Source of the DNA: Octopus bimaculoides
Lineage: Eukaryota
Reading direction: 5' to 3'
NCBI RefSeq assembly: GCF_001194135.2
Contig: NC_068983.1
Location: forward strand, 103,004,451 to 103,068,450
Length of the DNA stretch: 64,000 nt
Positions within the stretch are counted from its first letter, which is position 1. Each line of letters starts with the position of its first letter. The position numbers and the translations under genes are program-made. Below are positions 3,366 to 48,800 of this stretch, one piece after another. The notes below the pieces were generated by a model. That model worked only from the letters and a program-made list of their open reading frames with translations, searched no databases and had not been told where the DNA came from.

Positions 3366-3982
3366 ATTCAGGTCTAGAAAAATATATTGTGACAGTTACA
3401 GAATATAGTAAGTAATGTAACACCAATGACTATATAATCCAACCAAAATATCTGTTACACAAACATAAACAGAATTACTATTTAACCTTAACATCGTACA
3501 TGTTCAAAGAAACCTCAATGTACAAATTGAAATGCAAAAGAACGAAATAAAAAATGGATTTATGAATGAAAGTTTGGTAATTGCGTTTATTTCCACCATG
3601 CGACACTTATTATTGCAAACATGTTTTAACTAACTATACACACACACAAATACATTGATATATATATATGTTTCAAGTTGTAGCTGTAATTAAAAGGGAC
3701 CAGCCTTGTCATATTCTGTGTGAAGTTGAGTCTCCCTGAGAACTACGTTAATGTTATGCATGTCTGTGGAGTACTCAGCCATTTGTGAGTTAATTTTATC
3801 CTTGTATGGTAATGAAAACTGAAATTGACAATTGTGTGTATGCATGAACTTTTCTTTGGATTTATGGATCTGCTGTCTCTCTCACTTTCTCTTTCACTTC
3901 TTTTGTGTCCTTCTTCTCTCCTGCTTTTGATTTAACGATGTCTATATGTATCTATGTATCTACTTCTCTTGCGATGTGATAA

Positions 3983-4160
3983 ACATTTAAAAACACAAAA
4001 TGAACGCTGTCACCACTCACTGTCTCTTTCACTCTCTCACTTTTTCTCTCTTTCTCACGTCCTCTCTGATACATTTAAAAACACAAAAGGAACACCATCA
4101 CCGCTCACTGTCTCTTTCACTCTCTCTCTGACTTCCTTTCTGTCCTCCTCTCTCTCGCTT
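3983..4160. repeat. Tandem duplication, period about 88 bp
   Basis: acatttaaaaacacaaaa..gaac..tcacc.ctcactgtctctttcactctctc starts at both 3983 and 4071. Confidence 0.8.
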
Positions 4161-4856
4161 TGCCACTTTTTTTAAGTAAGTGTGATGCACACAACAGGTA
4201 CGTACAAAAACAAAAAGTTAGCGTATTAATATTATTGATAAATGCCCTAATGCAGTACCAGGCCAGGCACTGGCTCTTATGGCTTTTGATCTTAAATGAT
4301 TAAAAGTGTTATCATGTACATGTTTTGTCTTGATATAAAAGATAGACTACAGCCAACAATCTGCTCAATACCACAGATTTGCTCGTCAGTTGTTTGACCA
4401 TAACCAGTTGAGCATGTCCCTTAGTGGCTGACAAGTGCATCTTTGATCACAAGTAGAGTAGTTGGGGAGCATCATAACCATGTGTTGAGAGGAACCCTTT
4501 GGGATTTGGATAATTCACCACTGGAAACATGAGTTCATCATCCTTAAACTGTCATTCAGAAACTTTTTGAGCAGGATAGGCTGCACAACCTGAAGTAAAT
4601 TCTAAATAGGCTGTTTATCTTGACATGAGATCACCATGTTGCACGCATATGGCTGTGATGCATGTACCTGGTGTATTCTTATGAGATGGGTAGTCATGAT
4701 GGGTATATTGGGCTTCATATATTTGTACTCCAGTGTCTCTTTGATGGCATGCACTACTCTCTCATTCAATAATAATAACAATAATAATAATAGGTGTAAT
4801 ATTTACTTACAATTTTTTTAAAAGGCAAAAGATATTGAGAAGAATATTCAACTTAC

Positions 4857-5090
4857 ATATTTGTAATTCAGGATAACTGGGTCCATACATGATCTTGAGC
4901 AAACGCGATAACAGTGCATGGTTGATGCGATGCCACTGTTGGACAAGGGCATCATGATGGCGCCAATCAACACACATATTACGGAAAGTCTTCCATAAGG
5001 AAGGGGATGGAAAACATCGAGCACATGCTAAAATCCAGATCTCGAAAAGAACACTTAGGACTCGTTCACACAGATGTTCGGCAATGTCAG
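4857..5090 (-). CDS. RALGAPB: RALGAPB coding exon 4 (phase 1-1, 234 nt)
   Basis: Encodes (A)DIAEHLCERVLSVLFEIWILACARCFPSPSLWKTFRNMCVDWRHHDALVQQWHRINHALLSRLLKIMYGPSYPELQI, matching my recollection of human RALGAPB [46 protein letters not shown]. Acceptor ttcttttcttcatcag; donor T|gtaagt. The next exon is outside the window. Confidence 0.95.
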
Positions 5091-7627: not shown

Positions 7628-7664
<37 letters not shown>

Positions 7665-7912
7665 NNNNNNNNNNNNNNNNNNNNNNNNNNNNNNNNNNNN
7701 NNNNNNNNNNNNNNNNNNNNNNNNNATATAAATATATATATATATAGTCTGATGATGCTTAGCTGAAACAACAGTGGCCATGTAAGAGTATATGAACAAA
7801 TACATTTACACAGTATGCAGTGTTCAACATTCAGTTCTTTCTTAACCATGCAAGAAGATCATATCTTTGATATCTAATATCAATGTCTTTCTAATTTTTT
7901 TTTTGTCAGCAT

Positions 7913-7917
<5 letters not shown>

Positions 7918-7968
<51 letters not shown>
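7918..7968. repeat. (GT)n microsatellite; representative of many SSRs
   Basis: Read directly. Others: (GA)n about 18684-18724, (TA)n about 18902-18963, (TAC)n about 26314-26363, (GT)n-(AC)n about 29356-29422, (TTA)n about 63155-63198. Confidence 0.95.
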
Positions 7969-7971
<3 letters not shown>

Positions 7972-8698
7972 TGTGCATGTGCACACGTACCTGCATGCAC
8001 ACACGTAATCTTAATATCTAGCCAATAACATCAATGCCAAAAACAGATTCATGTGAATAATATAAATTGATTGATGATATTCTGAAATACAAAGTATAGA
8101 TCAACTAAACCTTCACCACCAATGTCAATTAAGAAAATAAAAATTATAAATTATTAGTAGTAGTAGTGTTATGACTTTTGGAAGCAACCCTGTCACCAGT
8201 TGAAGCAATAGTCTTAAGCTATTTGCAAGAAATGCTTTGAAAATAAGTAGTATTAGCAAAGTTATTTTTTCATGATTATGAAAATGATAGAAATATAAAG
8301 TAAATGAAGAAATGAACAAATAACAACAAAAATATAACAGTAATAATAAAAGATAATTAGCTATATAAATTCTTGGAATAAGTAAAACATCTTTTAGATG
8401 TATATCATTTTTAACCTACATTTTTAATACCAACACACTTCTATTTCTAGCCCACATACTATGCTATCTCCTCACTGTCTTTTTCTGCTATTACTATTAT
8501 TACTATAAAAGCCTCTACTCTTCAGAGAGGGTTAGTTGTATACCCATGATATACCCATCATCCAGTACCTATACTGTCTTCCCTATCAATGTCCTATTCC
8601 AACCAATATAAGGCAAGCCTTCCTCCCTAGGATATAAACCATTTGGAATTCCATCATTTCCCCTAGCCATCAACTTCAAACTGATTATCAGTTAACAG

Positions 8699-8972
8699 TC
8701 TGTATACACACTGAGTGTGTATATGCTGAAAGTCTTTTAAAGTGTGGTCTTTGTCTTGAGAAAGCATCTCTTACAGACATAGTGTTAGATACACAGAAAA
8801 ATAACAGCAGCAGGCAAAGGTTGCCCAGCATCAGTGGTAGAATTGCTGGAATCAGTTTTCTGCTGCTATTTTTCTGTTTTTAACATTAAACATCTATAAG
8901 AGAGGTTTTTTCAAGATGACTACCACACTTTAAAAGGCCTTCAATATATACAAATTTTAAGTATGTATACAG
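8699..8972. repeat. Degenerate palindromic (fold-back/MITE-like) element
   Basis: Left arm ttttaaagtgtggt..gtcttgagaaagcatctcttacag..cagaaaaataacagcagcag is mirrored by ctgctgctatttttctg..ctataagagaggttttttcaagatgactaccacactttaaaag. Outer tctgtatac/gtatacaga also pair. Confidence 0.75.
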
Positions 8973-9510
8973 ATTGCAAATTTTGAATTAATACTGCTTC
9001 CATCGCTAATAATGAATGACTATCAAGCACATTATCTGACCAGTCACAAAGCCTTTATAAAAGTCGTGGGTATAGCACTCCCCTTCTGAATAAACCATGT
9101 TTTAACAGTTCTTATCATTCCAAACCCCTCATGTGAGTGAAAAGATAAAATCTCAACACAAAAATGAGAAACTGTAAAATACCCAGCACCTCATTAAGTC
9201 AATGTTTATGTTTGTGTGTAAGTGTGCATGTGTAGAACTATTTCAGCTGGCTTAACACATCAAAAACAACATTATCATATCAGTTGTTCGCCGTCCCATA
9301 TTTCCTTTCCTTATGGTTAGGCAATTAATATTAAAAAAAAAACAAAAAAAACCCAGAAAATTAGATAGTTTACTTATGATAATTGCGACACTGTAATTAA
9401 TTTTGAAACATAATTGCTTCAAGCAAACATCTTGAATTAAAATAGTGTGTATAGAAAAGACTTCATATAACAGGTTATGAGTTTAATATTACATGTGTTT
9501 TATACATATA

Positions 9511-11370: not shown

Positions 11371-13110
11371 CAGTGTGTGTGTGTGTGGGGGGGGGATAAA
11401 TATTCATACATGTCAAAATTCTTTATTTATTTAATTTCTAATGAACATAAATGGGTTATACCAATACTATATTTGCATACACAAGCATAAACTAAGAATA
11501 TGCAAAAAAAACTAATAAATTATAGTAACTAATGAATTTATATACAATTATAAATATTTAGAGGTGAAAAAAGGTATTCATACAGAACATAAATAACTGA
11601 CAATTCTGATTTAATACTTCGTAGCATAACCATTATTCAGTTCCACTTCAACCAATCTCTTCTTGTAGTTCTTAATCAATGACTCGCATGTTTCTTTAGG
11701 AATTTTTGCCCATTCTTCTTGACAATTTTTTTTCAAATCTGGAATGCACGTTGGGGCTCTTGAATGAATCTTAATTTTCAAATAACACAAATTTTCAATG
11801 GGGTCCAAGTCAGGTGACTGGCATGGCCATTCTAATAATTTTATATTGTGGTTGACAATCCATTTTATGGTAGATTTCACCGTGTGCTTAAGGTCGTTAT
11901 CCTGTTGTAAAACCCACTCTTCACAAAGCTGGGGCTTTTCTACAGAATCCCATAAATTATTGTTCAAAATATTTTGGTACATCTCTGCATTCATTCTACC
12001 ATCTATTACATGTAAATTGCCAGTGTCATTTGCAGAGAAACACCCCGACACCATGATGTTGCCACCTCCAAACTTTACAGTAGGAATTGAGTTTTTCGGC
12101 AAATAGGCGGTACCATCTTTCCTCCAAAGATAGCTGCATGAATTTCGTCCAAACAATTCAATTTTTGACTCGTCTGTCCAAAGAACATTTTCCCAGAATG
12201 TATCAGATTTATCTTTATGTTCATANNNNNNNNNNNNNNNNNNNNNNNNNNNNNNNNNNNNNNNNNNNNNNNNNNNNNNNNNNNNNNNNNNNNNNNNNNN
12301 NNNNNNNNNNNNNNNNNNNNNNNNNNNNNNNNNNNNNNNNNNNNNNNNNNNNNNNNNNNNNNNNNNNNNNNNNNNNNNNNNNNNNNNNNNNNNNNNNNNN
12401 NNNNNNNNNNNNNNNNNNNNNNNNNNNNNNNNNNNNNNNNNNNNNNNNNNNNNNNNNNNNNNNNNNNNNNNNNNNNNNNNNNNNNNNNNNNNNNNNNNNN
12501 NNNNNNNNNNNNNNNNNNNNNNNNNNNNNNNNNNNNNNNNNNNNNNNNNNNNNNNNNNNNNNNNNNNNNNNNNNNNNNNNNNNNNNNNNNNNNNNNNNNN
12601 NNNNNNNNNNNNNNNNNNNNNNNNNNNNNNNNNNNNNNNNNNNNNNNNNNNNNNNNNNNNNNNNNNNNNNNNNNNNNNNNNNNNNNNNNNNNNNNNNNNN
12701 NNNNNNNNNNNNNNNNNNNNNNNNNNNNNNNNNNNNNNNNNNNNNNNNNNNNNNNNNNNNNNNNNNNNNNNNNNNNNNNNNNNNNNNNNNNNNNNNNNNN
12801 NNNNNNNNNNNNNNNNNNNNNNNNNNNNNNNNNNNNNNNNNNNNNNNNNNNNNNNNNNNNNNNNNNNNNNNNNNNNNNNNNNNNNNNNNNNNNNNNNNNN
12901 NNNNNNNNNNNNNNNNNTTTTTCACCCCTAAATATTTATAATTGTATATAAATTCATTAGTTACTATGATTTATTAGTTTCTTTTGCATATTCTTAGTTT
13001 ATGCATGTGTATGCAAATATAGTATTGGTATATCCCATTTATGTTCATTAGAAATTAAATAAATAAAGAATTTTGACATGTACGAATATTTATTTCCCCC
13101 CCCCCCACTG
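11371..13110 (-). mobile_element. Full-length Tc1-family DD34E transposon with long IR/DR terminal repeats
   Basis: TA|cagtg at 11369-11375 and cactg|TA at 13106-13112. The roughly 200-bp inverted arms are 11371-11572 and 12918-13110. The transposase reads WENVLWTDESKIELFG...QQDNDLKH...SPDLDPIEN with 34 residues between the second D and the E, and stops at 11611. The N-terminal half is in the N gap. Confidence 0.93.
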
Positions 13111-13117
13111 TATATAC

Positions 13118-13523
13118 GTGGAGACGTGGCTGTGTGGTAAGAAGCTTGCTTCCCAACCACATGGTTCCAAGTTCAGTCTGACTGCATGACATCTTGTGCA
13201 CACATCTACAATAGCCTTGGGCCAACCAAAGCCATACAAGTGGATTTGGCAGAAAGAAGCCCCGACCAAAGCCTTGTGAGTGGATTTGGTAGACGGAAAC
13301 TGAAAAGAAGCCCATTGTATACATATATATATATGTATTGTATATACATGTATATATCTATGTGTGTGTGTCTTTGTGTCTGTGTTTATCCCCCCCACCA
13401 CTGCTTGGCAACCGGTGTTGGTGTGTTTATGTCCCTGCAACTTAGTGGTTTCGGTAAAAGTGAGCAATAGAATAAGTACTAGGCTTAAAAATCCACAGTC
13501 AAATGGCTGAAAAAGATAAAAGA
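13118..13523 (+). mobile_element. Composite tRNA-derived SINE (family A: tRNA head + CORE-like segment + microsatellite + second module + (AAAAGA)n-type tail)
   Basis: A-box-like tggctgtgtggt, B-box-like ggttcc..gttcagt, and ...cttg.gca..tct..tatagcc. Carries an internal duplication of about 40 nt (ccaaagcc..gagtggatttgg twice). Confidence 0.8.
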
Positions 13524-13921
13524 TCACCCTTGGCTAGTACAAAAACTCATAGGCAACTGATCAGAGTGAATGCCTGACACAAATTCTTGCAACCGACTCA
13601 CATAAATAGTTCCCTCCACTTTGTTAAATCTGGCAAGTTGTTAGGAAGAATAAGTAACATCAAACTTCTTAAAAGATTTTCAAGTTATGTTTTTAATTAG
13701 GCACACAAACACACGACAGATTTTTAATATAAATAATATTTTAGACGTCATAAGCATCAACCAGTGCTTGTAATATCATCCAGCATCACGAATACACACA
13801 TGCACAGTATATAAACATACATATATACACATTTGAAGCTGATGTTTACAGTCTTCACTACATCACTATGTGAGTTCTTTTGCTTTATTTGTATACCCAG
13901 ACACACATACATATATATATT

Positions 13922-13952
<31 letters not shown>

Positions 13953-13958
13953 ATATAT

Positions 13959-14170
13959 TCTTTTACTCTTTTACTTGTTTCAGTCATTTGACTGCGGCCA
14001 TGCTGGAGCACCGCCTTTAGTCGAGCAAATTGACCCCCAGGACTAATTCTTTGTGAGCCTAGTACTTATTCTATCAGTCTCTTTTTGCCGAACCACTAAG
14101 TTACAGGGATGTAAACACACCAGCATCGGTTGTCAAGCGATGTTGGGGGGACAAACACAGACACACAAAG

Positions 14171-14203
<33 letters not shown>

Positions 14204-15191
14204 CATACATATATATATANNNNNNNNNNNNNNNNNNNNNNNNNNNNNNNNNNNNNNNNNNNNNNNNNNNNNNNNNNNNNNNNNNNNNNNNNNNNNNNNN
14301 NNNNNNNNNNNNNNNNNNNNNNNNNNNNNNNNNNNNNNNNNNNNNNNNNNNNNNNNNNNNNNNNNNNNNNNNNNNNNNNNNNNNNNNNNNNNNNNNNNNN
14401 NNNNNNNNNNNNNNNNNNNNNNNNNNNNNNNNNNNNNNNNNNNNNNNNNNNNNNNNNNNNNNNNNNNNNNNNNNNNNNNNNNNNNNNNNNNNNNNNNNNN
14501 NNNNNNNNNNNNNNNNNNNNNNNNNNNNNNNNNNNNNNNNNNNNNNNNNNNNNNNNNNNNNNNNNNNNNNNNNNNNNNNNNNNNNNNNNNNNNNNNNNNN
14601 NNNNNNNNNNNNNNNNNNNNNNNNNNNNNNNNNNNNNNNNNNNNNNNNNNNNNNNNNNNNNNNNNNNNNNNNNNNNNNNNNNNNNNNNNNNNNNNNNNNN
14701 NNNNNNNNNNNNNNNNNNNNNNNNNNNNNNNNNNNNNNNNNNNNNNNNNNNNNNNNNNNNNNNNNNNNNNNNNNNNNNNNNNNNNNNNNNNNNNNNNNNN
14801 NNNNNNNNNNNNNNNNNNNNNNNNNNNNNNNNNNNNNNNNNNNNNNNNNNNNNNNNNNNNNNNNNNNNNNNNNNNNNNNNNNNGAGCCTAGTACTTATTC
14901 TATCAGTCTCTTTTTGCCGAACCACTAAGTTACAGGGATGTAAACACACCAGCATCGGTTGTCAAGCGATGTTGGGGGGACAAACACAGACACACAAACA
15001 TATACACACACATACATATATATATATGTATATACATATATATGACGGGCTTCTTTCAGTTTCCATCTACCAAATCCACTTACAAGGCTTTGGACGGCCC
15101 GAGACTATAGCAGAAGACACTTGCCCAAGGTGCCATGCAGTGGGACTGAACCCAGAACTATGTGATTGGTGAGCAAGCTACTTACCACTCC
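13959..15191 (-). mobile_element. Family A SINE copy spanning an N gap
   Basis: Tail tcttttactcttttacttgtttcagtcatttgactgcggccatgctggagc at the left end; head ..cttaccactcc at the right end. Confidence 0.8.
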
Positions 15192-16033
15192 TACGTTTAT
15201 GTGTGTGTGTATATGTCTATATATACACACACACATGCAACACAAACACATATATACACAGACATCTCAAAAGTAAACAGACACCCCACCATTACACAAT
15301 TCAGTCTGTGAATAGTAGTAGTAGTAGTTGCATGGGGGGATATGGGGCATGTGCTGTAACAGCATGTCACTGCATCCATCATTTGTTGGTGATCCCCCAA
15401 CTCCTAGCAGATGACCCATCTGCACCATTCAGGGGGACGACCCTTCATCCCATGGGTCTGTTTTTGGTAACTCAGTGTTGATGAGGGATTTTATGAGGTC
15501 AGAGTGCAAATCTTACCTCAATCTCATTTAGTTGCCTTTTTACGACACAGGAAATGTTGCATCTATTCTTTGGCATACTGGTCCACACACACACAGCACT
15601 AGAGCAATGTGAAATGAAGTGTTTTGCTCAAGAATACAACACACCACCTGGTCTGAGAATCGAATCGGCAATCTGATGTTGAAATCACGATTGCCAGATC
15701 ATAGGTTTAATTCCCAACTGGACAGTATGTTGCGCTCTTCAGCAAAACACTTCATATCAAATTGCGTTAGTGCTGTGTGGAGACTGGCATGCCAAAGAAA
15801 TATCTGTGAAGATACTGCTTAATTAGCACAGTGCCTAAATCAGTCATGTCATTAAAAAAATGTTCAAGGAGGTCTACTAAATACTACACTAAGTATTTAA
15901 ATGCATCAAATAACATTACTTTGTTTCTAAAAATAATATACACACACAAATGTACATGCATACACACACACACACACACACAAATGTACATGTATACACA
16001 CACACACATTCTCTCCCTGTTTATTTTCTATTC

Positions 16034-16069
16034 CTTTCTGTTGAAGAGCGTAGGCTCAAAACGTAAAAG
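16034..16069 (+). ncRNA. Degenerate minimal type-I hammerhead ribozyme motif (likely Penelope pLTR/retrozyme-type repeat)
   Basis: CTTT-CTGTTGA-A-GAGC-GTAG-GCTC-AAAAC-GT-A-AAAG: stem I CTTT/AAAG, stem II GAGC/GCTC, palindromic ACGT helix III, GUA triplet. Two core deviations from CUGANGA...GAAA. Confidence 0.5.
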
Positions 16070-16435
16070 ACTTTTTCATTTTTCCTGAGCATCAAACTAA
16101 TACACTTGCTTGTTGTTCATACACCTGTCTTTGTCTTTTGTTTTTATATAAATTTCAACTATATATATATATATATATATATATATGAATAAAACAAATT
16201 CAATTTTAAGAATGACCATTGCTTGTTAGTGAGCTGTAAACCAATATCTATAAAATGATTGGCAAACACGTGTTTCTTCAGATGGTGAAAATTTATTAGC
16301 TTGTTTTGGTTCATGTACTATTATGTTGCTAACAAGCCCAGCCTTAGAAAGACAACATTTGAAAGAAATGTTACTATTCATAGGAGTTCCTTTCCTTAAA
16401 ATTTATTTTAATTTCAAATGTTTAATGGATACACT

Positions 16436-16663
16436 CTCTACTCTTTTACTCCTTTATTTGTTTCAGTCATTTGACTGCGGCCATGCTGGAGCACCGCCTT
16501 TAGTTGAGCAAAACGACCCCGGGACTTATTCTTTGTAAGCCTAGTACTTATTCTATCGGTCTCCTTTGTCGAACCGCTAAGTGACGGGGACGTAAACACA
16601 CCAGCATCGGTTGTCAAGCAATGCTAGGGGGACAAACACAGACACACAAACACACACACACAA

Positions 16664-16718
<55 letters not shown>

Positions 16719-16880
16719 TACGACGAGCTTCTTTCAGTTTCCGTCAACCAAATCCACTCACAAGGCTTTGGTCGGCCCAAGGCTATAGTAGAAGACACTT
16801 GCCCAAGGTGCCATACAGTGGGACTGAACCCGGAACCATGTGGTTGGTAAGCAAGCTACTTACCACACAGCCACTCCTGC
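16436..16880 (-). mobile_element. Family A SINE, complete and close to consensus
   Basis: All modules are present and CpGs are largely retained. Further minus-strand copies lie at about 17126-18110, 43965-44355, 47340-47505, 50410-50810 and 51810-52197. Confidence 0.85.
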
Positions 16881-17331
16881 GACTCTGTATATTTTTTCTT
16901 TATGATGCACAGTATAAGTTCTCAATATTCTCCATGAATACTAGTTTTCTTTCAATCTGATTTAAAGCAGCCCTGAACTTCATTTTCCTCCCAGAAATTA
17001 GCTCTCCATAGAGTAGAAACTTTGGAATTTCTATCATCTTCCACATTAACTGCATGGACAACTCAATTCAGCCTGGTATGCTGTAGATACATACTCTTAC
17101 CTGTATGTATGTATACATACATACATTTTATTCTTTTACTTGTTTCAGTCATTTGACTGTGGCTATGCTGGAGCACCGCTTTTAGTCAAACAAATCAACC
17201 CCAGGACTTATTCTTTGTAAGAGTAGTACTTATTCTTTCGGTCTCTTTTGCCAAACCACCAAGTTATGGAGACATAACCACACCAACATCAGTTGTCAAG
17301 CAATGGTGTAGGGACAAACTCAGATACACAA

Positions 17332-17363
<32 letters not shown>

Positions 17364-17927
17364 NNNNNNNNNNNNNNNNNNNNNNNNNNNNNNNNNNNNN
17401 NNNNNNNNNNNNNNNNNNNNNNNNNNNNNNNNNNNNNNNNNNNNNNNNNNNNNNNNNNNNNNNNNNNNNNNNNNNNNNNNNNNNNNNNNNNNNNNNNNNN
17501 NNNNNNNNNNNNNNNNNNNNNNNNNNNNNNNNNNNNNNNNNNNNNNNNNNNNNNNNNNNNNNNNNNNNNNNNNNNNNNNNNNNNNNNNNNNNNNNNNNNN
17601 NNNNNNNNNNNNNNNNNNNNNNNNNNNNNNNNNNNNNNNNNNNNNNNNNNNNNNNNNNNNNNNNNNNNNNNNNNNNNNNNNNNNNNNNNNNNNNNNNNNN
17701 NNNNNNNNNNNNNNNNNNNNNNNNNNNNNNNNNNNNNNNNNNNNNNNNNNNNNNNNNNNNNNNNNNNNNNNNNNNNNNNNNNNNNNNNNNNNNNNNNNNN
17801 NNNNNNNNNNNNNNNNNNNNNNNNNNNNNNNNNNNNNNNNNNNNNNNNNNTTATTACATTAAAGGCTGTTACTATCTATAAGTAAAGCTATATGTTGAAA
17901 ATGGATGCTAAAATCAGCCGTTAATGT

Positions 17928-17972
<45 letters not shown>

Positions 17973-18110
17973 CACACGATGGGTTTCTTTCAGTTTCCAT
18001 CTACCAAATCCACTCACAAGACTCTGGTCGGCCTGAAACTACAGTAGAAGATGCTTGCCCAAGATGCCATGCAGTGGGACTGAACCTGGAACTATGTGGT
18101 TGGGAAGCCT

Positions 18111-18295
18111 GACTATGAATTCTCATTTGTACCTATCATCATAGGTGCATTAGGTTATATGCCAATAGATTTGCACAAGAACATAAAAATATTCGGTTTC
18201 ATGGAGAAAGTGCAATAGAAACTGATGCGGATTCTCTAAATCCAATCTATTAGCAGTAAGTCATTCCAAAAATTCTCCATTTGAGATTCTTATAG
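18111..18295 (+). mobile_element. C-terminal fragment of a restriction-like-endonuclease LINE (R4/Dong-like)
   Basis: Translates DYEFSFVPIIIGALGYMPIDLHKNIKIFGF, resembling the PIIIGALG motif at the end of REL-type LINE ORFs. Stops follow downstream. Confidence 0.5.
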
Positions 18296-18680
18296 GAACA
18301 GAGGCACACACACTTCTGTGTATGTATCAACATTTCAACGAACACATCAACTCAACCACATATGTACAAATACCAGGAACTCTCTTAACTCAAAATGCTT
18401 TGTTGCTTTGTTAGCAACTGGCTTGAACTCTCTCAAGAAGGACTTAAATAATACATAGATATATAAGTATGTGTGTAAGTATTATACAAATGTATGCTTT
18501 GTGCTTATGAATAGGTAAGAACGAATATATTTTAGCAATGAAATTTGAGTTTTTTTTAACATTTCTTTTTCAATGTAAGATTCTAGCACCAAGCTTTTTT
18601 ACACATAATAAAAGAGAGTTGATATCATATCTGGAATATAGTAAATGTATTGCATATATAATGAGGTTATTTATTTAAAT

Positions 18681-18726
<46 letters not shown>

Positions 18727-18894
18727 GAATAAAAGGAAAATGATAATTATTCAAGCTGCAATTAAAAGATTATAGGTTAGTTAATTGCAATAATACTAAC
18801 AGATGTGTCAACACTGACTGCAGAAATTGTTCACAAGACCCATGTAAATAAAAAGCAAAAATAAGTTTGAAGAGTATCTCAACTGAAGAGAGCA

Positions 18895-18971
<77 letters not shown>

Positions 18972-19720
18972 CTATGACAATAACAACAAAAAAAACATCG
19001 ATAAACTTGACCAGAGTGAAATAAAAATAGCATTCCAACCATTGAAGCCACACAGATTAATTACAATTAAGGGTCGTACTTTGTTTATTATTATTTTCCA
19101 GTAAGAGAATAGTTAACAGATTAGATGTAGTTCCATGGGAGACAGACTGGTTGGTGTTAAACAGAAACATGTGACATGCAGCTCAGTGAAGGGAAAAGGA
19201 AATTGTACTCACACATGTGTGCCTGTACATATACACACACGTGTGTGTAAATACTTGTATGTATTCACGTTTATACATTTGCTTATATGTGTGCATGTGT
19301 ATACATTTATGTCTACACATTTATACACTATATGTATGTTTATACATTACAATATATTTATGCATGTTTAAACATTTACATGTATATATGCATGCTTATA
19401 CAATTCATATATATATGTTGAAGCAGATCTTCTACAGCTGACTGCCTTTCCAGTCACCAACCTTCATCTGCTTACTTTGTTTAGAAGCAAGTAAGGGCAG
19501 CAAGAAGACAATTTGGCTGTAGAGAATTTACCTCAACAAATTTTGTCTGAACCATGCAAGCATGGAAAATTAGACGTTAAATGATGATGATGTATGCATG
19601 CTTATACAATTACATAAACATATGTTTATACATAGATATATACATATATGATTGCATGCTTATGTGTGTATGCGAGTGTATTTGTATGTATGTGTGTGTG
19701 CATATATATGTGTGTATGTA

Positions 19721-19770
<50 letters not shown>

Positions 19771-20639
19771 TGAAGGCATGTTTTAATTTATATACACGTA
19801 TATGTATATATAAATTAAAAGATGTATATTATTTGTGTAAATATATGGTCTAGTTGCACTCATGATTACCAGATTGTAATTTTGATTCTCAGATCGATTG
19901 CAGGTTGTGTTCTTGAGCAAAACACTTTATTTCACATTACTTCATTTCACATTGCTCCAGTCCACTCAGCTATAAATGAGTAACCCTGCAACAGACTAGC
20001 CTTCCAATCAGACATCTTCTAAGCATCATTAGCAGTTTCATCTGAATAATTAATATATATTTGAATAACTTAAAATAAGAAATTTCACTGATAATATGTA
20101 TTTGGGTGCAAGCATGGACATATGGTTAAGAAGTCCACTTGTAAATCCTACTGCACTGCACTTTGGAGCAAGTGGCTTCAACCATAGCCTCAAGTCAACC
20201 AAAGTAATGTTAGTGAAATTTAGTAGGTAGAAACAGTAGAAATCCACCCGAAAGGCCATTCTTGGAATTGGATGGTAGACTCAGTCTACTCTCTAGTTTA
20301 AGATAAACACCTAACCCTTAGTTGCCTTTAGTAGAGTCTGCACTGCTGCTAATATTTGGGTCAAATCTGCAGTTTGAGGGTAACATCCTCCTGTCATCCT
20401 ATCAGTATTCGAGACCCTGATAGAATGTCAAGGGTGCTGACCATTCTCCTTTTACTATCTAAAGTAACTATGAGAGATAGAAATATAAATACTAATGACT
20501 TCTAAGAATTACATTACAGAAGTAAAGACACTGGTTCAATCATTTATTTTGCTTTGGTCATTGGAACACAGCCATATTGGGGCACCTCCTTGAAGAATTT
20601 AGTCAAACAAATCAACCCCAGTACTTATTTTAAAATTAT

Positions 20640-20674
<35 letters not shown>

Positions 20675-20816
20675 NNNNNNNNNNNNNNNNNNNNNNNNNN
20701 NNNNNNNNNNNNNNNNNNNNNNNNNNNNNNNNNNNNNNNNNNNNNNNNNNNNNNNNNNNNNNNNNNNNNNNNNNNNNNNNNNNNNNNNNNNNNNNNNNNN
20801 NNNNNNNNNNNNNNNN

Positions 20817-21847: not shown

Positions 21848-22204
21848 GGAATGGAAAATATAACAATTTTCATTGTCATTTAGACAGTGTGAAAGCTGAA
21901 TAGCCATCAATAAGACAGCAAAAGCAGAACAGTCTGAAAGTCTTTATCCTTTTTACATTTAGACTGGCCATATCAAGCCTCTCACACCTACCTTACAATG
22001 TCATTCTAAAACTATAAGAATCACATGGAATGGAAAATATAAGTTTTCATTGTCATTTAGACAGTGTGAGAGTTATATAGCCATCAATAAGACACAACAA
22101 AGGTAGAACAGTCTGAATGTCTTTATCCCTTTTGTATTTAAACTGGCCACATCAAGCCTCTCACACCTACCTGACAATGTCATTTTAAAACTGTAATGAT
22201 CACA
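21848..22204. repeat. Tandem duplication, period about 179 bp, including part of a piggyBac-type MITE
   Basis: ggaatggaaaatata..ttttcattgtcatttagacagtgtga starts at 21848 and 22027. Each unit contains actggcca.atcaagcctctcacacctacc..acaatgtcatt. Confidence 0.85.
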
Positions 22205-22538
22205 TCAATGAAATCTCAATGCTACAAGATAATGCATGATTAATTGAAAACAATGGGAATAAATAGACTTAACATTTGACAGAGTTATCTGAATACTAAA
22301 AGGTTATATAAAGATAACAATATGGAGATATTAAATAGAAAAGCTGGTACGATATTGCTCCTTAAATGTCCTTAATTGCTATAACAGACATGGTAATTCT
22401 ATTAGTAATTGAAATATCTCCAAGGTAAAGAGAAATTAGATTGGATGTGAATTCAAAGAAGCAAAACAGAATTAAAACTTTATAATTATCAACTTCTATA
22501 CATAACTGCTGATGTTTTGTGTGTGTGAGTGTGTGTGA

Positions 22539-27098: not shown

Positions 27099-28359
27099 AA
27101 ACTGTCACATCCTGGCCGTGCCACTGAATCAAGGGTGAGGAGGTGGGAGCAAAGGGGATGCCTACATCAGTTTGCAACTACATAAGCACCTAAAACAATT
27201 AACGAAAGCAGGGTACACATTGCCAATCCACACAAGTGACAGCTAGCTGTGTTGTGCCATAAGTGACTAGAACACAGAATCAAATAGATATATTGGATAT
27301 GAATCTATGCACAATTGATCTAATACCATATTCATTGATATTTTACTTTCTCGATGTGAACTTGCTCAATTATCATGTTAAATTCTAATAAGCCAATGCC
27401 TTTATATAATTTCAATAAATCAACCACCTCTTGAAAATTCACATCATTACTAACTCAATATCGCAACAACTTAAATCTATTAATAATTGAAACAAACCAC
27501 AATAATGTCAGCCATTAAAATTCAATGAAGAATATTAATTTCCTGAAAATATCATTATTTTTATTATATTTTATCTTATTTTACTTAAATTATTTTCAGA
27601 AAATTTTTGAGTGTTTAAAATTTCTGTTTGAATGTTAATTTGATAACTTAAGTAAAAAAAAAAAATCAATTTGATCCCTTAGTATTTAAATGGGGCATAA
27701 CTAACTCAAATATTCTATCCATTTTATGTGCAAACTGACCAGATCTGATCTCTCACACCTACCCTACAATGTCATTCTAAAAATAAACAACCACATCATT
27801 GAAATCTTTAAGCTACAAGATAAGGCATGATTAATTCAAAACAATGTGAATAGATAAGTATTACATTTGACAGAGTAATGTGAATGCTAAAGGATTAATT
27901 TTTAAAAAAATAATAATAAATTCCATTTTTCTGTCTCTCATAATTGATATTTATTTGCAATGTGATCATTTCAGTGATGATACCATTATTTTACCAAATA
28001 GCCCAGTGTTAAAGAGAAGAGAAAAAGACTAATGAAAGAAAATGCATATTTTTAGTTGCTGTGATCAATATTTGAGATATGAGGGAAGGGTCAGTGAAGC
28101 AAGGCAAGCTGGAGGAGTGGGGGTCATATTACAACACCAACAATAAGAAATACAACTATGCCATAAAAGAAACAAAAAATGGGCCGGAGGGGGGGGGAAT
28201 GCCATCAATAACAACACCAACAACAATAACAACAACATCAGTTAAAAATGAGAAAGAAGCAAAAAAAAAAATGTTTGAGTGAGAGACACAAAAATAAAGA
28301 TTGATAGACAAAAAGACAAGTCTAAAAGGAAAAAAATGAGTTTTAGTCAAGACACTTAC

Positions 28360-28380
28360 GTGAGCTCAGTCCAATGTCAT
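28360..28380 (-). CDS. RALGAPB: Candidate 21-nt alternative microexon of RALGAPB (phase 1-1)
   Basis: tgtttttgtatgcag|ATGACATTGGACTGAGCTCAC|gtaagtgt. It is open in the frame set by exons 3 and 4 (K-DDIGLSSP-DIAEH). No transcript evidence is available. Confidence 0.5.
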
Positions 28381-29354
28381 CTGCATACAAAAACAGTGCA
28401 TGCTATAAGAACATCATAATTATTGTCATAATAATTGTTATTATTATTATTATTATTAACAAGTAATTAGGTTTTCAATACACTAATAAAATCTAAATTA
28501 TTTCTATTCTACTTTATTGGTGCCTCTCATAGCAAAAATAGAACAAGGAAAAATATTAAAAAAATTAAAACTCCAAAATTCCTCTGTGTGTATGTGTGTG
28601 TGTGTGTGTGTGTGTTGTTTTAGTCTGTTACATTAGTTAATATTTTGTTCTTTTACACTAAAAATTAAAAAAAGAAATGAACCTTAATAAAAATTTAAAA
28701 GTTCAGTATTATAAATATCTTAAATTTTTAAAATTCCATATGTACCCACTTTCCAAGAACAGAGTAAGACTAGATGAAGGCTGAATAATAAATCTATATA
28801 ATTATGTGCTGTTTGTTACACTTGGATCATGCATGCAAAACAGGGTTTTAGATTTTAATTGTTTAAAAAAAAATGTGTCTAGTCTGAAGGTCAATTTTCT
28901 TATTGTTCTTATTTTTCCGTTTTCCATTGGTAATAATATCTATCATGAGATATATTATTGGTAATAATGATTTATGAAGAAGTTATATGATGCAACATCA
29001 TCATCTCTGTTCACTGTGTATGTATGTATGTGTGTTTACACACCGATTCAATTTGAACATACATAAATCTCAATATTTAAAAAAGAAGAACAGAAGGCAA
29101 TTTTGAAGACTTTTTTTTTACCTAATAATGGGATGGGTATAAAAAGTATTAATATTATAAAACAAATTAAACATGCCATTGGCAGAGGGAGGTAAACAAC
29201 AAAACAAAATGTTTTCTGCAGCATTAAAAAGAAATTAAAATATATATATTTTTTTTAAATATTCAAAATTGTATAATTTCTCAAAAGAACAAACCACTAC
29301 AATTTAGACAGTAAGTAGTTTAGTAAACTAAGCAGAACAAACAACTATATGTAA

Positions 29355-33440: not shown

Positions 33441-36400
33441 ATTTAATTCAGAGAGACCAGTGAATGAAGTCCTATATAGTTACTCATCCCAAATCATCTA
33501 TGATCAATTCTAACTCGTGTGACCTTTTTTACCAACACACAGTGTGGAACCTCATCTTTTCCCTGTTACTTGTCTACACCAGCTATCATCTGACCCATAT
33601 AAGTTGGCCATATCAACCAACGCAGAGACAAAAGGCTATATCAAGAAGGCCAAGCTATGCAAGAAGATACTTATGACTAGTTGCTACAAAATGCTTGTGT
33701 AACATTTCCAATACCAGTTTAATCAAGGTTTATTGAAGCAACTCAATAACAATATATGTAATTACAAGCCAATGAGGGGAACCTCTACATGGTCAATTGA
33801 TCTGTTAGAAACAGCAGCCAAAATTCCCTTAAATCACACATACTACCATTTCAAAAAAAGGAAGTCATATTTGGTAAAAAAAAAATTTAACCACTTAGTG
33901 AAGGAAAAGCAGAACCCATGCCTCTTAAATTTTTCAGAGCCTCTGAGACAGGTGGTAAGAAGGGAGGAAGATATCCTGAAATCAGGGCCTTTGCCTGAAT
34001 GCTTGCAACAGAGCAAATGCTGCTAAAAACATTCTAATACCAGTGGTGTGATGTTAAACTGGATGTGATGTTAAATTTACTACCCAAGAACTCAGGGTAC
34101 AAAAAGCTGGAACAAAAACCCCAAAGGGAGTTTATAACATAAAGTAACTTGATGAGATTTGAACTCAGAGTACAGACAGTCAAAACAAATGTCATAAGGC
34201 ATTTTTGTCTTCTGTTTTAACAACTCTGATAATTTGCCATTCATTTCTTAAAATTTAGTTTTTCATGCTTAATGATCATGTCAGAGTTCTAATTAAGAAC
34301 AGAACAAATATCACCTTTCTTTACAGTTCAAACAATGACGATTTTTTTATTTTAGAATTCAAAAGATGAAGGACATGTTAAAAAATTTCAAAAAAGAATT
34401 TTCCAAAATTAGTAATGTTTATTGGAAATGCATCATGTGGAGAATAAATGAAACTGGAAGGAAAAAAAAAAAAAAGAATCACCATCAAACATAATAGCTG
34501 GTATCATCCTCGCTATAGTTATTAGATTTATTTTGCCCTTTAAGTTGCTAAGCTTATGCTTTCACACAAATATATGTGTAAAAATATCAAGTAACCTCTT
34601 CAGTTAAGGTTTATCCTATAAAAGGTGATTGTCAAATAAATTTCCATTAATCTTATACACTGGAGATTGATTTCAGACATAAATATGACTAGCAAGATTT
34701 TAGGATCCATTTTATGTTTTTTCAACCTGAAAACAGATCATTTCAAGCTATCATAGACAATTGTATTATGATATACTGTGAACTTTGCTTTGCTGTGTGT
34801 CAACAAAGGATAAATGCTATGTAAACAAAGGATAAAAGCATGATACAATTTAAAAGTCAGTTGCTTGACTTTTAATGATCAGATACAAGCAAATAAACAC
34901 TCAGTAAAGAGCCATTCTGACTTCAAGCAAAAGATACGGAGTGGTTCACACCTATCAGCTAAAGTTGAAGTTTGTTTTGAGTCTATAGGTTCATTAAGTG
35001 GAGCGTTCCCCAGTTTCTAAGGTGATTAAGCCTTCAGCTTTTAAATCAACCATATCAAGCCCAAATATTCTATGCATTTTACATTTTAAGCTGACCAGAT
35101 CTAGCCGCTCACATTGACCTTACAATAGTATTCTAATAATAAACAATCATATCATCGAAATCCAGAAGCTATGAGATAATGTAAAACAATTTAAATAAAT
35201 AAGCATCAAACTTAAAAGAATAAAAAGGTAAAGACACCCTTAAGTCATGAATGACCATGGGATTTCACCTAGAAAGTTCTCCTCCAAGGCACAAGTCCAG
35301 GCAAGGTTGTTTATGGAAGACCAGCAATCACCCATGCATACCATCCTCCCCTTTCCATGTCAGCAATGTCATGCAAGGGAAAAGCAAAGGTCGATACAGC
35401 TTGGCACCTGTGATGTCTCAACTCATTTCTACAGCTGAGTGAACTGGAGCAATGTGAAATAAAGTGTCTTGCTTAAGAACACAACACAGCCCAGTCCAGG
35501 AATCAAACTCACTACCTGGTGACTGTGAGCCCAACACTCTAAGCACTGAACCATGCACCTTCAGATGGCACATGGCTAAGTGAATAACCTGAATACTAAA
35601 TGGTTAAGGGGCTGAGAGTACAAGAGTAAAAATAATCCATTGTAGGGTTAACTCAACTATTGTGGCAATCACTTTTAGCGGAGGAGACTGAAGTAATATG
35701 GAAGTGACTTGCTCAAAAACACAATACACTACTGGATTCAAGAATTGAACACTTGGCCTAAAGATTCCCAGCTCAACATCCAAACAACAGCAAATGGAAA
35801 CCAGCCTGGAGTCATAGACTTGGTTTAGAAAAATCTTACTTCTGTGTATAGCATTGATACATAATAGAAGGTAATACGCTAAAAATAAAATATTAATATT
35901 TTAATAATTGTTATTCATAATGTTTCAGTTAGGTATATTGCTTCAGACTTCTATCAGAGATGAAATGGGATTGTGTGATACTCATGCCTCTACCAACAAT
36001 GTATAAGAAATGAGTTGATCATAAACAATAAATTTACGAGAGCTTCATGATTGCTTAAACCTCTAGAAATAACAACCAAATCACTCTTAATGGCTTAAAA
36101 GAGGTTATATTGAATAATGTAACCATGGAAATACACTATAGTCAAAAACAAGATAAAGTAGCTGAACATAATGGATAATAGGCCTGCTCAATCAGAAATG
36201 AACTGGGGCCAAACAACAATGACAATCACTAGATTCATCACCATGCACTTACCATTGCACTGTACACACAACTTAATGATAAGGATTTCTTTCAGCTACG
36301 CATAAGGCTGATGCTTTTTTTTTGTTTTGTTTCTTTTGCAGTTAACTGTGATATCTAGTATATCACTGGTACTTATTTTACTGGGTCCAGTGGGATGAAA

Positions 36401-39475: not shown

Positions 39476-39640
39476 CTTTCTCAGCTGGTGGTGCTAATAG
39501 GCTATCATTAGCAGCAAGAAGAAACTTCAGCATAGTTTCCCACGTACTTCTTGTGAGTATAGTTGAGTCCAAAGCAACAGTTTCAATACTGCGCAACACT
39601 CGCTGACACTGTGCTGACTGGCGTTTAACATGGTCCACAC
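39476..39640 (-). CDS. RALGAPB: RALGAPB coding exon 3 (phase 1-1, 165 nt)
   Basis: (S)VDHVKRQSAQCQRVLRSIETVALDSTILTRSTWETMLKFLLAANDSLLAPPAEK, compared with human [42 protein letters not shown] (recalled). Acceptor ttaaag; donor G|gtaac. Confidence 0.92.
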
Positions 39641-44465: not shown

Positions 44466-45659
44466 GAGTTAAAATCACTTTTCAAAGTATTTAGAGAACA
44501 AGAGAGAGATATAAATTATATATCCATTCTTTTAGCATGTTGAGTTTTTCTGTGATATTCAAATTACCACGTGCATGCAGATGTAGAATTTGAGCTTGTG
44601 TATTATGTTTCAATGGGCTGGATGTGGTCCTGAAAAAGGAGCAAGATCTCCTGAAACATGCTTAGACACTACCAATTTTTCTATCTTCAATCACATTATT
44701 TACACAAATGTATTCATATACAAAATGTTGTAACTTTCAGTACTAGCCATAAATTCAATAGAAAATCTGTAGAGAGAACTTAACAGGTACTTTTAATACA
44801 CTTTAGCACACATTCAATTTTAGCTAGTCAATTACTAGCTTTGTTTTTTTTTTCTTTCTTTTTCTTATTGGATTCTTGTTTCTTGGGCTTGGGACCATAA
44901 CGACAACTGGTACAGACACTGAGTATCCACTGGCTTTTAGGAACTTTTTGGAATTGTGTAGTATGGATAGCCTGATCTATTTTGCTGCATTATTGCTACA
45001 TATGGGTAAGTTTGTTTTCTTATTTTTATGTTACCCTACCTTGACACTGAATGTAGGGTGATCTGGACAGGAAAGGCTAAATATGAAGCTGATCCACTCA
45101 GGGAATGTTCTTATGGAAGTGTTTATCAAACAGATACCTAATGACAAAAACCTCTGTGATGGTCAACAGCCCCACCCACAACACAGAAATGTGGCTGCAA
45201 ACATCAATATATGAGATCCAGAGCATCTTGTCCGCAGAATGTTTATATCAGTAACACAGTTTGGCTGTTGCATGTCTGAATCAAAGAACATTGCAACATA
45301 TACATATTAGAGTTTAAAAAAACCCTGAAAATGCAAGAAGATGAACAGGAACATTGCAATTACCATTAAAGCGATAAGCTGTAATATTGGTAAACTGCTG
45401 CCATTTTGATAATAATAAAAAAAATTAACATTTAGCAACCAGCTAGAGCTGAAGGAGTATCAACTGGTACTATAAAGACCATGCATCACAATACTTGCCC
45501 CATTTACTCCTTAAACACATCAGCCCATTCAGACACTGCTAATCCTCAAAACATAATCCACCTACCCTAAATTCTATACCACAATTCTAATATTCCACAC
45601 AAATTTGGCACATCAGTGGAATGGATATGTAATTTATATTTATTTTCCTTGTTCATTGA

Positions 45660-45879
45660 CCCTTTAGCATTTAAACTGGCCACATCCAGCCAAAATATTC
45701 TGTCTGATTTATGCTCAAACTGGCCAGATGCAGCTTCTCACACCTACCCTATATTGTCATTCTGAAAATAAACAATCACATCATCAAAATCTCAAAGCTA
45801 CGAGATAATGCATGATTAATTCAAAATAATATGACTAAATAATCAATACAGTTGACAGAGTAATCTGAATGCTAATGGG
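45660..45879. mobile_element. piggyBac-type MITE (about 220 bp)
   Basis: ttga|ccctttagcatt ... aatgctaatggg|ttaa: CCC..GGG TIRs with a TTAA target (left site mutated). Related copies at about 27671-27898, 21950-22300 and 35070-35210; a different TTAA-bounded degenerate element at about 29796-30019. Confidence 0.75.
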
Positions 45880-48800
45880 TTAAATCTTTGTAAAGCAGTT
45901 TTTAACTCTAGATTTCAGGCCTAATCAAATACTTCCAAGGAAAAATTCCAATATCATTGTTATTGATATTTTATGTTCTACCTGCATTGCCACTGTATCT
46001 TAATTTTTTAGAAGAAATATTAAATAAATTTTTGTAGTAAAGGAGAAAGAAAAAAACCTCACAATACGTTTTTCAATTTGCAGACAGATATTTGGTTTGT
46101 CACATTCTGTAATTTGGTGTCATTGAAACGTATATGTGGATGAATGGCTTCAGATAATAGTTCAAGTCATATAAAAAGTGCAATTAGCAAGATAATTTAC
46201 CATGCAGATGGATGTTCACTGGGGCTTTGTCCTCAGCCCTCTTTTCTTCATTATATATTTGAAGTGAATAAGCAGGTGTTCAGAACTGGCTGGATCTCGT
46301 CACAGAATCTATCAGAGAGCTACAGAAAAAGTTTGAAATGTGATAAAGTAGCCAAGAGATAAAAGGCTTAAAGGTCATTATGATTAAGACAAACTATTCA
46401 ATAACTATAAGACTCAAACCCCAGTTCCATTTAGTGTACACAGAATGTAGGCATGGCTAAAATACAAATTTAGTACTGTGTATTTGATGCCAGCAGTGAA
46501 TATAAGAAATAGAAAGTTAGATTTCAGAGAAGGGGAAGGGAGAGAGAGAGAGATTATAAGGTGTCCAGAACTTTAGACAGCCCAAATTTATAGAGTATTA
46601 TGTAATCATACAATATAAATCAGAGCTACTAAGTTTGTGACAAGTTGTAGATAAGTTCTGCTTAAGAGATGTATTGGAGAAAGAGTAGAATGTAAGAGAC
46701 ATGCATAAAATGTGAGATGCTATAAAAGGGTGACAGATGAGCCAGGAGTTCCACAGATCTACAGTGGTCAGAAAGAGATGAACAAAATATGGCCAATGAA
46801 TGCAATATTTTAATTTAAGAAAGACTGGACAGTCAAAAGAGCAGCTGGATAAGAAAGGTAAAGAACAATGTGATCAGGAGAGACAGTTATGCTTGTATGG
46901 ATATGTAAAGGAAATGAGGAGTACATGCTACAAGTTGGTAGCAAGAGTATCTACCTGTAGCAGAAGAAACTACTAGAAAAATTATGGGAGGAAATGTTAT
47001 GGTTAAGCTTTATGAAAGACAAGTTGTAGGATGAGAGACTGAAAGATAGAGAGATTTTATATTGTAGACTTGCTCACTCATTTGTTGGCTTAAAGTCTGT
47101 TTTCCCCAGCTTAGTCCAACTCATCTGAAGCAGGATTTTATGGCTGAATGTGCTTCCTGTTGACCCATCCTTACCTGTTCTTCAAGCAAATGATTCTTTT
47201 TTTTTATTCCACAGTTCCTCAAAATCATCAAACAACTATATATTATCAACAAGGGAAGTAATCATGTCACTGCTTTACTCAGCCAGTCACAAACAAAGCT
47301 GTGAAATGTAAATATTCATACACAAACACACACACACACATATTGTAGGTTTCCATACAGTTTCTGTTTCCCAAATTTATTCACAAGATATTGGTCAGCC
47401 TGGGGCTATAACAGAAGACATTTGTCCATGATGCTGTGCAGTGGAACTGAATCTGGAACCAGTTTTTTGCAAAGTAAACATCTTAAGTACACAACCATAC
47501 CTGCTCCTATATAGACATTTGTCCAATGGTTGTGAAGCAAACTTCTGAACCACACAACAATGCCTATGATGATGAAGATGATTTTTGTCTAATACAAGAC
47601 CCATTTTTGTAAAAGGGAGATGACTGCTAATTATTTATGTCCTATAGTCTACTTAATTATCAATAAACCTTGGTGGGATTTGAACACTGAAAAGCAAAGC
47701 ATAAAACTAGTCATTTACTGTTTATGTCAATGCATCCACTTTATATTAAAAGAAAAAAAAATACTGACTGAAGTAAAACTTTGAGCATTATCTATCTGAA
47801 TCAGATAAAAACAGATCTAGTTTGAGCAAATTGGTATTAGTATGATAATGCAATCCAACTCCCATCTTTATTACTAAGTTCTCTCTTAAATTTGGTACAA
47901 CTTGGCAAATTATGTTTCAATTCTATAATTTTTTTTTTCCTTTGACAATATTCAAACAGAGAATTGTATGTAAATTAATTCCTTGCTGACTATTTAACTG
48001 GTTTTAAGATAAACCAATACACTAATCTAAAACTTTGGTAGATCTAGTTAAATGCATTCCTAAGACTCAAGTTTACAATCCAAGACTTTATAGTGTTGAC
48101 TCTTTGATCAAAACTAATTGGTTCATTTTCAATTTTTGTTTTTAAGATAAAATCTCAAAAGAGCAAAGTGACCAGAATCAACACACTTTCCAATTCTCAA
48201 AGATTTATTACAAGAAGAAAACAGTTGTAAACAAGTGTAAATGAAGATGAAACCTTCATAAAACCACTAATTTAATTGTTATGCTAATATCAATTTTTAC
48301 TTTTTTTTATTTTTGTGCTAGCAAGTGAAAAATCATGTGAAAATCATGAGGGGAAAACAATGTGATGGGAAGTGGATGAAAAATACAGGAACGAGTTAAG
48401 AAAAATGACACAAGGTCAGTATGTTTGGCAAATATTCATTGAATCCCTATGCATCCTATGACTGCAAAAGGATAAGAAGTGCAAAACAGCAGCCTGACTA
48501 TTCAGTTGAATAAAACTTTTTGAATATCCATGCTCATGTGCAACTATGAATGTATTTGGATAAATTCTGTACAACATGATAATGGCATTGATGGATAGTA
48601 TCAATGAACATCCACTCAATGACCCAGATGTAACAGAAGCTTGGCTGCTACATTTTGCTTCCAGGCAAAATTGGAAGATCTGGATACCAATGACAAAAAG
48701 CAACTCATTTTTATCTAAGACAGAAATGATGGTCATACAAAAAGTTTTGGTGAAACTCTGGGACTTGACAATGAATTTTAGCAGTACAAGATCTGAGATA

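Follow-up and report, generated by a model that had tools for sequence, protein, structure and literature searches.

A conserved 21-nt coding microexon in a 34-kb intron of octopus RALGAPB, probably spliced as a regulated cassette

The neural microexons of bilaterians that are activated by SRRM3/4 (eMIC) proteins fall into the class of 3-27 nt, preserve the reading frame and extend a surface loop of a signalling protein by a few residues. They have a strong 5' splice site, a UGC within about 10-20 nt of the 3' splice site and conserved flanks; in cis, eMIC-activated microexons are marked by UGC motifs beside the 3' splice site. The motif (U)GCAUG is the site of RBFOX, and its position upstream of an exon goes along with repression more often than with activation. 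Regulated microexons typically have flanks that are more conserved than constitutive exons and a UGCAUG on the 3' splice site. To our knowledge, the well-studied microexons come almost all from vertebrates and flies. In mouse, Ralgapb contains a microexon that belongs to a brain-specific programme, and its deletion led to premature neurogenic gene expression in a CHyMErA-seq screen (PMC12868881).

The exon described here lies in octopus RALGAPB, the gene for RalGAP-beta. It resembles the neural eMIC microexons in its length of 21 nt, in preserving the frame, in the few residues it would add to a probable surface loop of a signalling protein, and in its strong 5' splice site, the UGC near its 3' splice site and its conserved flanks.

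Our analysis started from a window of 64,000 nucleotides of the Octopus bimaculoides genome. RALGAPB is encoded on the minus strand of the window with its start ATG at 42933, and its exons match fragments of PF20412 (RALGAPB_N) in a protein search. About 16 kb upstream of this start and on the opposite strand, at 59172-60089 (plus strand), the window contains an intron-less 305-aa ORF for syntaxin-5 (MTCRDRTNEF...). The exact protein is present in NCBI/eukprot, and its cluster at 90% identity or above also contains O. vulgaris CAI9719964.1 and O. sinensis XP_029634023.1. The features around the microexon are as follows, in the order of transcription; here and below a slash marks an exon border.

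39476 to 39640, minus strand: upstream constitutive coding exon, 165 nt, phase 1-1, encoding ...LLAPPAEK, end AAAG/gtaaca
28405 to 28409, minus strand: putative branch point cttat (YTNAY) with its A at 28406, inferred from reading the sequence
28398 to 28403, minus strand: GCATGC from a motif scan, giving GCAUG at -23 and UGC at -20
28381 to 28395, minus strand: 3' splice site region tgtttttgtatgcag, a T-rich tract plus TTG-Y-ATG(G)CAG with UGC at -5, delimited in a five-way alignment
28360 to 28380, minus strand: microexon ATGACATTGGACTGAGCTCAC, 21 nt, phase 1-1, with homologous 21-nt exons in four further loci
28349 to 28359, minus strand: 5' splice site gtaagtgtctt, GTAAGT followed by a T-rich stretch
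4858 to 5090, minus strand: downstream constitutive coding exon (exon 4), 233 nt, start CTGACATTGCC, encoding (A)DIAEHLCERV...

With its flanks on the minus strand the microexon reads ...gcatgcactgtttttgtatgcag/ATGACATTGGACTGAGCTCAC/gtaagtgtctt, the acceptor side ending in ttgtatgcag, or, over a longer stretch, ...tcttatagcatgcactgtttttgtatgcag/ATGACATTGGACTGAGCTCAC/gtaagtgtcttgac... The upstream exon (39640..39476) ends ...CCAGCTGAGAAAG/gtaaca (...GAGAAAG/gtaaca), and exon 4 begins cag/CTGACATTGCC, also read as cag/CTGACATTGCCGAACAT. The final G of the upstream exon, the microexon and the first CT of the downstream exon together encode D-D-I-G-L-S-S-P. The skipping product is ...LLAPPAEK-A-DIAEHLCERV and the inclusion product ...AEK-DDIGLSSP-DIAEH, which is free of stops; inclusion replaces the junction Ala by Asp-Asp-Ile-Gly-Leu-Ser-Ser-Pro, a net gain of seven residues. 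In the octopus 21-mer the phase set by the flanking exons is open and the other two frames contain stops. A sequence-only reading of this DNA had already drawn attention to a stop-free unit of 21 nt, i. e. 3n, in phase 1-1 with a GTAAGT donor, with TGC and GCATG within 25 nt upstream and located outside recognisable repeats. All of this was found in place: the unit is present as described, GCATG is at -23 and TGC at -20 and -5, and the 21-mer belongs to no repeat detectable within the window.

The host intron (5091-39475) is 34,385 nt long, of which 3,431 nt (about 10%) are N from assembly gaps; its A+T content is 67% of the called bases and 61% with the N runs counted, and further hidden features in the N runs are possible. 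The repeats nearest to the microexon are a SINE-like element at 27671-27918, with copies at 45656-45883 (81%), 22124-22322 (77%) and 35040-35223 (70%), and microsatellites at 28413-28461 and 28585-28615. At 11611-12156 (minus strand), adjoining an assembly gap, a 181-aa ORF (...DNDLKHT...WPCQSPDLDPIENLC...) resembles by eye a fragment of a Tc1/mariner transposase. A sub-threshold Rfam match to SNORD38 at 27969-28037 (24.8 bits against a gathering score of 44, E = 0.03) is located on the plus strand, opposite to RALGAPB, and is probably due to chance; no Rfam family was found at the microexon site. A dispersed intronic repeat family yields in-frame decoy exons with GTRAGT donors, which read VSGRPESS, ALGRPKPS and VSGRPKPS.

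18038-18018, 16782-16762 and 15104-15084, minus strand: decoy exons of the dispersed repeat family, with related ORFs at about 13055-17862 and at 50590-50913

Considered by itself, the window gives little reason to single out the microexon. The same intron contains 27 in-frame, stop-free AG..GTRAGT units of at most 60 nt, 14 of them with GTAAGT. The acceptor of the microexon has pyrimidines at 11 of 17 positions, and several decoys are as good or better. Exon 4 and the microexon are the two places in the window with the pattern AG-N-TGACATTG, against an expectation of 0.40; 7 of 100 shuffles reach two. At this level the unit is an attractive yet unproven decoy that departs from chance only weakly. 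We take it to be more than chance because a homologous exon is present in four other loci, and not on account of its splice motifs and open frame.

Homologues were looked for in RALGAPB loci of other animals. The congener (P0001, contigs L001-L005) is 87.6% identical over exon 4 and its flanks, and its contigs span exon 4 only. More distant loci are designated by their handles where they have to be told apart. L006 is the region around the exon-4 fragment P0022 on a 1.58-Mb ENA contig, with 10 kb on each side of the fragment. The 10 kb upstream of its exon 4 contain seven in-phase AG..GTRAG units, one of which is the homologue of the microexon; a 21-nt AG..GT unit matching DDIGLSS at five or more of seven residues arose in none of 2000 dinucleotide shuffles of these 10 kb. 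A degenerate pattern made from the octopus and L006 microexons was then scanned over 241 million metagenome records and returned exactly two loci, L010 and L011, both of them RALGAPB; the exon sequence of these two was partly ascertained by the search pattern, their position inside RALGAPB was not. With octopus codons only, the metagenome pattern found nothing, and bacterial and archaeal genomes scanned for host contamination gave nothing either. The four homologous exons are:

L006, 6574-6594: ttgttgcatgcag/AGGATACAGGATTAAGTTCAT/gtaagt, encoding EDTGLSS, 3.5 kb upstream of exon 4; with an alternative flank extent acatttcttgttgcatgcag/AGGATACAGGATTAAGTTCAT/gtaagt, 21 nt
L010, 1497-1517: ttttgcatgcag/AAGACACTGGACTAAGCTCAT/gtaagt, encoding EDTGLSS, after exon 3 (357-515) and before exon 4 (from 2965)
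L011, 2914-2894: tttttgcatggcag/AGGATACTGGATTGAGTTCAT/gtaagt, encoding EDTGLSS, after exons 2 and 3 (exon 3: 4680-4522)
L020, 2566-2586: ttgttcttgcatgcag/ACGACACAGGATTAAGTTCAT/gtaagt, encoding DDTGLSS, 7.5 kb upstream of exon 4 on a 4.7-Mb ENA contig

The downstream exon follows the microexon in L006, L020 and L010, and the upstream exon precedes it in L010 and L011; the 3.2-kb locus of L010 contains exon 3, microexon and exon 4 in this order, with an intron of only 2.4 kb. Over the five loci the peptide is [D/E]D[T/I]GLSS, with the same length and phase and in the same intron. L006, L020, L010 and L011 are the sequences closest to the octopus gene. Their exon 4 has 74-79% amino acid identity to octopus; Strigamia, a centipede, and Acanthaster, a starfish, reach 69%, and insects about 55-60%. 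Judged by their sequences, the four loci are probably molluscan. The conservation of the 21-mer and its splice sites, named at the outset as one check on the candidate, was obtained in four other RALGAPB loci, and the proposal of an in-frame RalGAP-beta microexon holds up with it: size, phase, position, peptide and splice signals are kept in all four genomes. Comparison across these genomes indicates that 28380..28360 (minus strand) is a genuine coding microexon of RALGAPB, and that it is ancient and deeply conserved.

The substitutions within the exon have a coding signature. Over the five loci it varies at 8 of 21 positions; third codon positions are variable in 5 of 7 cases and the others in 3 of 14 (one-sided Fisher p = 0.04), and one of the three variable non-third positions is a synonymous first position of Leu. 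L006, L010 and L011 differ pairwise by 2-5 nt and still encode the same seven amino acids. Phase 1 alone is open throughout the five loci; the other two frames are closed or not conserved. The pattern argues for purifying selection on the encoded peptide.

The exon also stands out from its surroundings. When 20 kb of L006 and L020 were compared by blastn, the only colinear blocks were the microexon block (57 nt, 87.7%) and, with 82-85%, exon 4 and four exons further downstream; the introns around the microexon were unalignable. L010 compared with L011, L006 and L020 gave 84-86% for the microexon block and 78-79% for exons 3 and 4. Altogether the microexon block (43-57 nt) is 84-88% identical, which equals or exceeds the 78-85% of the adjacent constitutive exons.

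In the five-way alignment the donor GTAAGT and the acceptor AG are invariant, and the T-rich tract and the TTG-Y-ATG(G)CAG acceptor are invariant or nearly so. L006, L020, L010 and L011 have a UGCAUG at -9/-10, which overlaps the 3' splice site. In octopus this copy reads UGUAUG, and a GCAUGC is found instead 15 nt further upstream. UGC motifs are located at -20 and -5 in octopus, at -9 and -5 in L006, L020 and L010, and at -10 in L011. A GCAUG occurs within 25 nt upstream of the microexon in five of five species (the background density of GCATG in the host intron is 1.42 per kb), and none of the five has a downstream GCAUG within 300 nt of the microexon. This cis-anatomy fits regulated splicing without pointing to a direction or a tissue. 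A cassette exon would also be in line with the length of 21 nt, which is too short for ordinary exon definition, with a flanking-intron block that exceeds the neighbouring exons in conservation, and with candidate UGCAUG and UGC motifs on or beside the 3' splice site, of the type that is read by RBFOX-type and SRRM(eMIC)-type factors. From these motifs and their conservation we lean towards an exon that is alternative and regulated. That its inclusion is enriched in neural tissue is a tentative suggestion, to which we give somewhat less than even odds.

Outside the five loci the exon was not encountered. There is no microexon candidate in L008 (intron of about 390 nt), in L021 (intron of 1.3 kb) or in the insect-type loci L009 and L016; all four have short introns and belong to other lineages. 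L007, L012-L015, L022 and L023 offered too little upstream sequence for this comparison. RALGAPB of L008 is flanked by retroelement ORFs (RVT_1, HTH_animal) at 3426-9227 and 16822-20708. Many insect genes that do not have this intron read LLAPP-TVK-DDVGDQ-LCERV, i. e. they have the length of the skipping isoform, and the full-coverage matches to inclusion-isoform queries are insect genes of this intron-less type (P0090 is from Choristoneura). A GLSS peptide at the junction is absent from the about 400 RalGAP-beta fragments and proteins retrieved, among which no mollusc transcript-derived protein spanned the junction. The full-length annotated representatives that were retrieved have no insertion at the junction, except for a different one in Acanthaster planci XP_022103685.1.

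In the protein, no gap is needed to align the skipping isoform with human RalGAP-beta (9qwp_B, residues 171-295), and therefore the microexon is an insertion into a loop of otherwise fixed length. The insertion point corresponds to about Q218/G219 of 9qwp_B (numbering of the deposited sequence), within the RALGAPB_N domain (PF20412), and the seven additional residues fall between a helix that ends with ...LLAPP and a helix that starts with LCERVLSVLFE. The length of this inter-helix segment, which we infer to be a surface loop, is conserved from insects to human, with indels only in RalGAP-alpha2 and in Acanthaster RalGAP-beta. Speculatively, the conserved G-L-S-S-x-D could serve as a phospho-acceptor (S-x-x-D; Ser-Ser-x-Asp). 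The octopus microexon product additionally has S-P.

The residues that follow this insertion point are unusual in octopus. The sequence-only reading had proposed that some invertebrate orthologues read K-DD-x-G at this junction. The motif is real (K-DDVGDQ, K-DDIGDH), but exon 4 ordinarily begins with it in orthologues that have the same length as the skipping isoform, and it says nothing in favour of the microexon. Nearly all other animals retrieved have DD[IV]GD[QH] at the start of exon 4. Octopus exon 4 begins with (A)DIAEH, both in the window and in the congener (P0001/L001), which amounts to three substitutions in a near-invariant loop motif, and in octopus only the microexon supplies K-DDIG. 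The microexon opens with [D/E]D[T/I]G in the five species and so resembles the ancestral exon-4 start DDIG. In octopus its first nine bases match the exon-4 start at eight positions, as had been pointed out before, and its opening ten (ATGACATTGG) agree in full with the beginning of exon 4 in L006 and L010 (10/10). Beyond about 10 nt no similarity between the microexon and the exon-4 region was found by self-blast, tblastn or local alignment with shuffles. A longer segmental duplication of exon 4 was set aside, as there is no extended nucleotide or protein similarity. The microexon may still have arisen by duplication of the 5' end of exon 4, for which four codons are no proof.

These findings may also be read in terms of an ancient regulated microexon, shared by all molluscs or more widely, that switches on or off a conserved motif in a loop of RalGAP-beta. 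Splicing, possibly neural via readers of UGC and UGCAUG, would then set the presence of K-DDIG together with a Ser-Ser-x-Asp phospho-acceptor. We consider this full version of events rather improbable.

Several other explanations have to be weighed against a genuine coding microexon. The unit could be a pseudo-exon that owes its existence to the AT-rich composition of the intron and is never used by the spliceosome. The 27 comparable units in the same intron, the unremarkable pyrimidine content of the acceptor and the post hoc choice of the candidate would all be expected of such a decoy; a homologous 21-nt exon in four other genomes, with variation at synonymous sites and invariant splice sites, would not, and neither would the result of 0/2000 shuffles nor the finding that this is the sole conserved island in otherwise unalignable introns. 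Because this island of conserved splice sites outdoes its constitutive neighbours in conservation, a chance origin is ruled out for practical purposes. It is very unlikely, too, that the unit is a non-coding splicing element, i. e. a recursive step or a decoy exon for the removal of a long intron that is absent from the mature mRNA. Its location in a 34-kb intron, the splice signals as its most conserved part and a peptide that occurs in no protein of the databases searched would agree with such a role. Yet the upstream exon (...AAAG) joined to the microexon (ANGA...) rebuilds no GT 5' splice site, the conservation is equal in L010 despite its much shorter intron, and the substitutions are of the translated type, with no amino acid change against 2-5 nucleotide changes among three species. 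A recursive splice site or RS-exon had also been examined as a candidate in its own right and was rejected; the junction reads AAAG/ATGACA in the window and AAAG/A[GCA]GA in the other loci, and no GTRAGT is regenerated. An exon that functions in other molluscs and was recently inactivated in the octopus lineage would explain why the UGCAUG abutting the splice site is lost (UGUAUG) and why octopus has two lineage-specific residues (I for T, and P for Y at the junction). We consider such a relic very unlikely: the AG, the GTAAGT, the open frame, five to six of seven residues and the T-rich tract are all intact after very long divergence, and a GCAUGC is present 15 nt upstream.

A more serious question is whether the microexon is constitutive, that is, part of essentially all RalGAP-beta mRNAs, in which case the skipping isoform would be a mere annotation assumption. 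The conservation of peptide and splice sites would be expected under constitutive and regulated use alike, the donor matches GTAAGT perfectly, and the loss of DD[IV]GD from octopus exon 4 (ADIAEH) in combination with a microexon that gives K-DDIG is sensible if inclusion is the default. On the other hand, the flanking block is better conserved than constitutive exons and the UGCAUG sits on the 3' splice site. Exon 4 of the four related genomes keeps the ancestral start; in L006 and L010, where at the nucleotide level exon 4 is read to start with AT, skipping restores the ancestral K-D-DIGDH. Moreover, lineages that do not have the exon keep the exact length of the skipping product. We therefore regard constitutive use as unlikely, with an appreciable residual chance. 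The best explanation overall is a genuine ancient coding microexon of octopus RALGAPB that probably acts as a regulated cassette and not as a constitutive exon, to which we assign a probability of roughly 0.8.

Raw sequence was enough to recognise a 21-nt exon within a 34-kb intron, and comparison between genomes was enough to validate it. The microexons described so far are joined by a deeply conserved lophotrochozoan one whose 3' splice site carries a conserved UGCAUG. The gene models of mollusc RalGAP-beta are worth checking for it; it may already be annotated in RefSeq or Ensembl isoforms and hence be known in a narrow sense.

Compared with the neural eMIC microexons, the RALGAPB exon differs in that its motif is a full UGCAUG, the RBFOX consensus, over the splice site, which could equally repress. 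Like RBFOX-regulated cassette exons it has a conserved (U)GCAUG within about 300 nt, namely the UGCAUG at -9/-10 in four species and the GCAUG at -23 in octopus. The motif is upstream of the exon with none downstream, and this upstream position predicts repression rather than activation. The insertion in Acanthaster planci XP_022103685.1 (P0128) consists of eight residues at the same inter-helix loop (...APPLEP-GALSMVPV-PDSLAEQLCER...). In the related genomic fragment P0105 it is contiguous with exon 4 and there is no separate exon, and its likeness in sequence to the mollusc microexon is unconvincing. An independent shift of the acceptor could account for it, and so could an annotation artefact.

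The closest relative by gene is the mammalian Ralgapb microexon. The alternative segment of mammalian RalGAP-beta is located further downstream. The two microexons share the gene family, yet human 9qwp_B has no insertion at the octopus junction, and PMC12868881 gives no exon position; probably they are not homologous. The mammalian orthologue nevertheless has a brain-specific microexon that is tied to the timing of neurogenesis (PMC12868881). If inclusion of the octopus exon were neural, it would provide a test case for a microexon 'code' that is shared by cephalopod nervous systems. And if the microexon indeed toggles the loop motif of RalGAP-beta, molluscs would offer a parallel to the brain-specific microexon of mammalian Ralgapb, maybe of independent origin.
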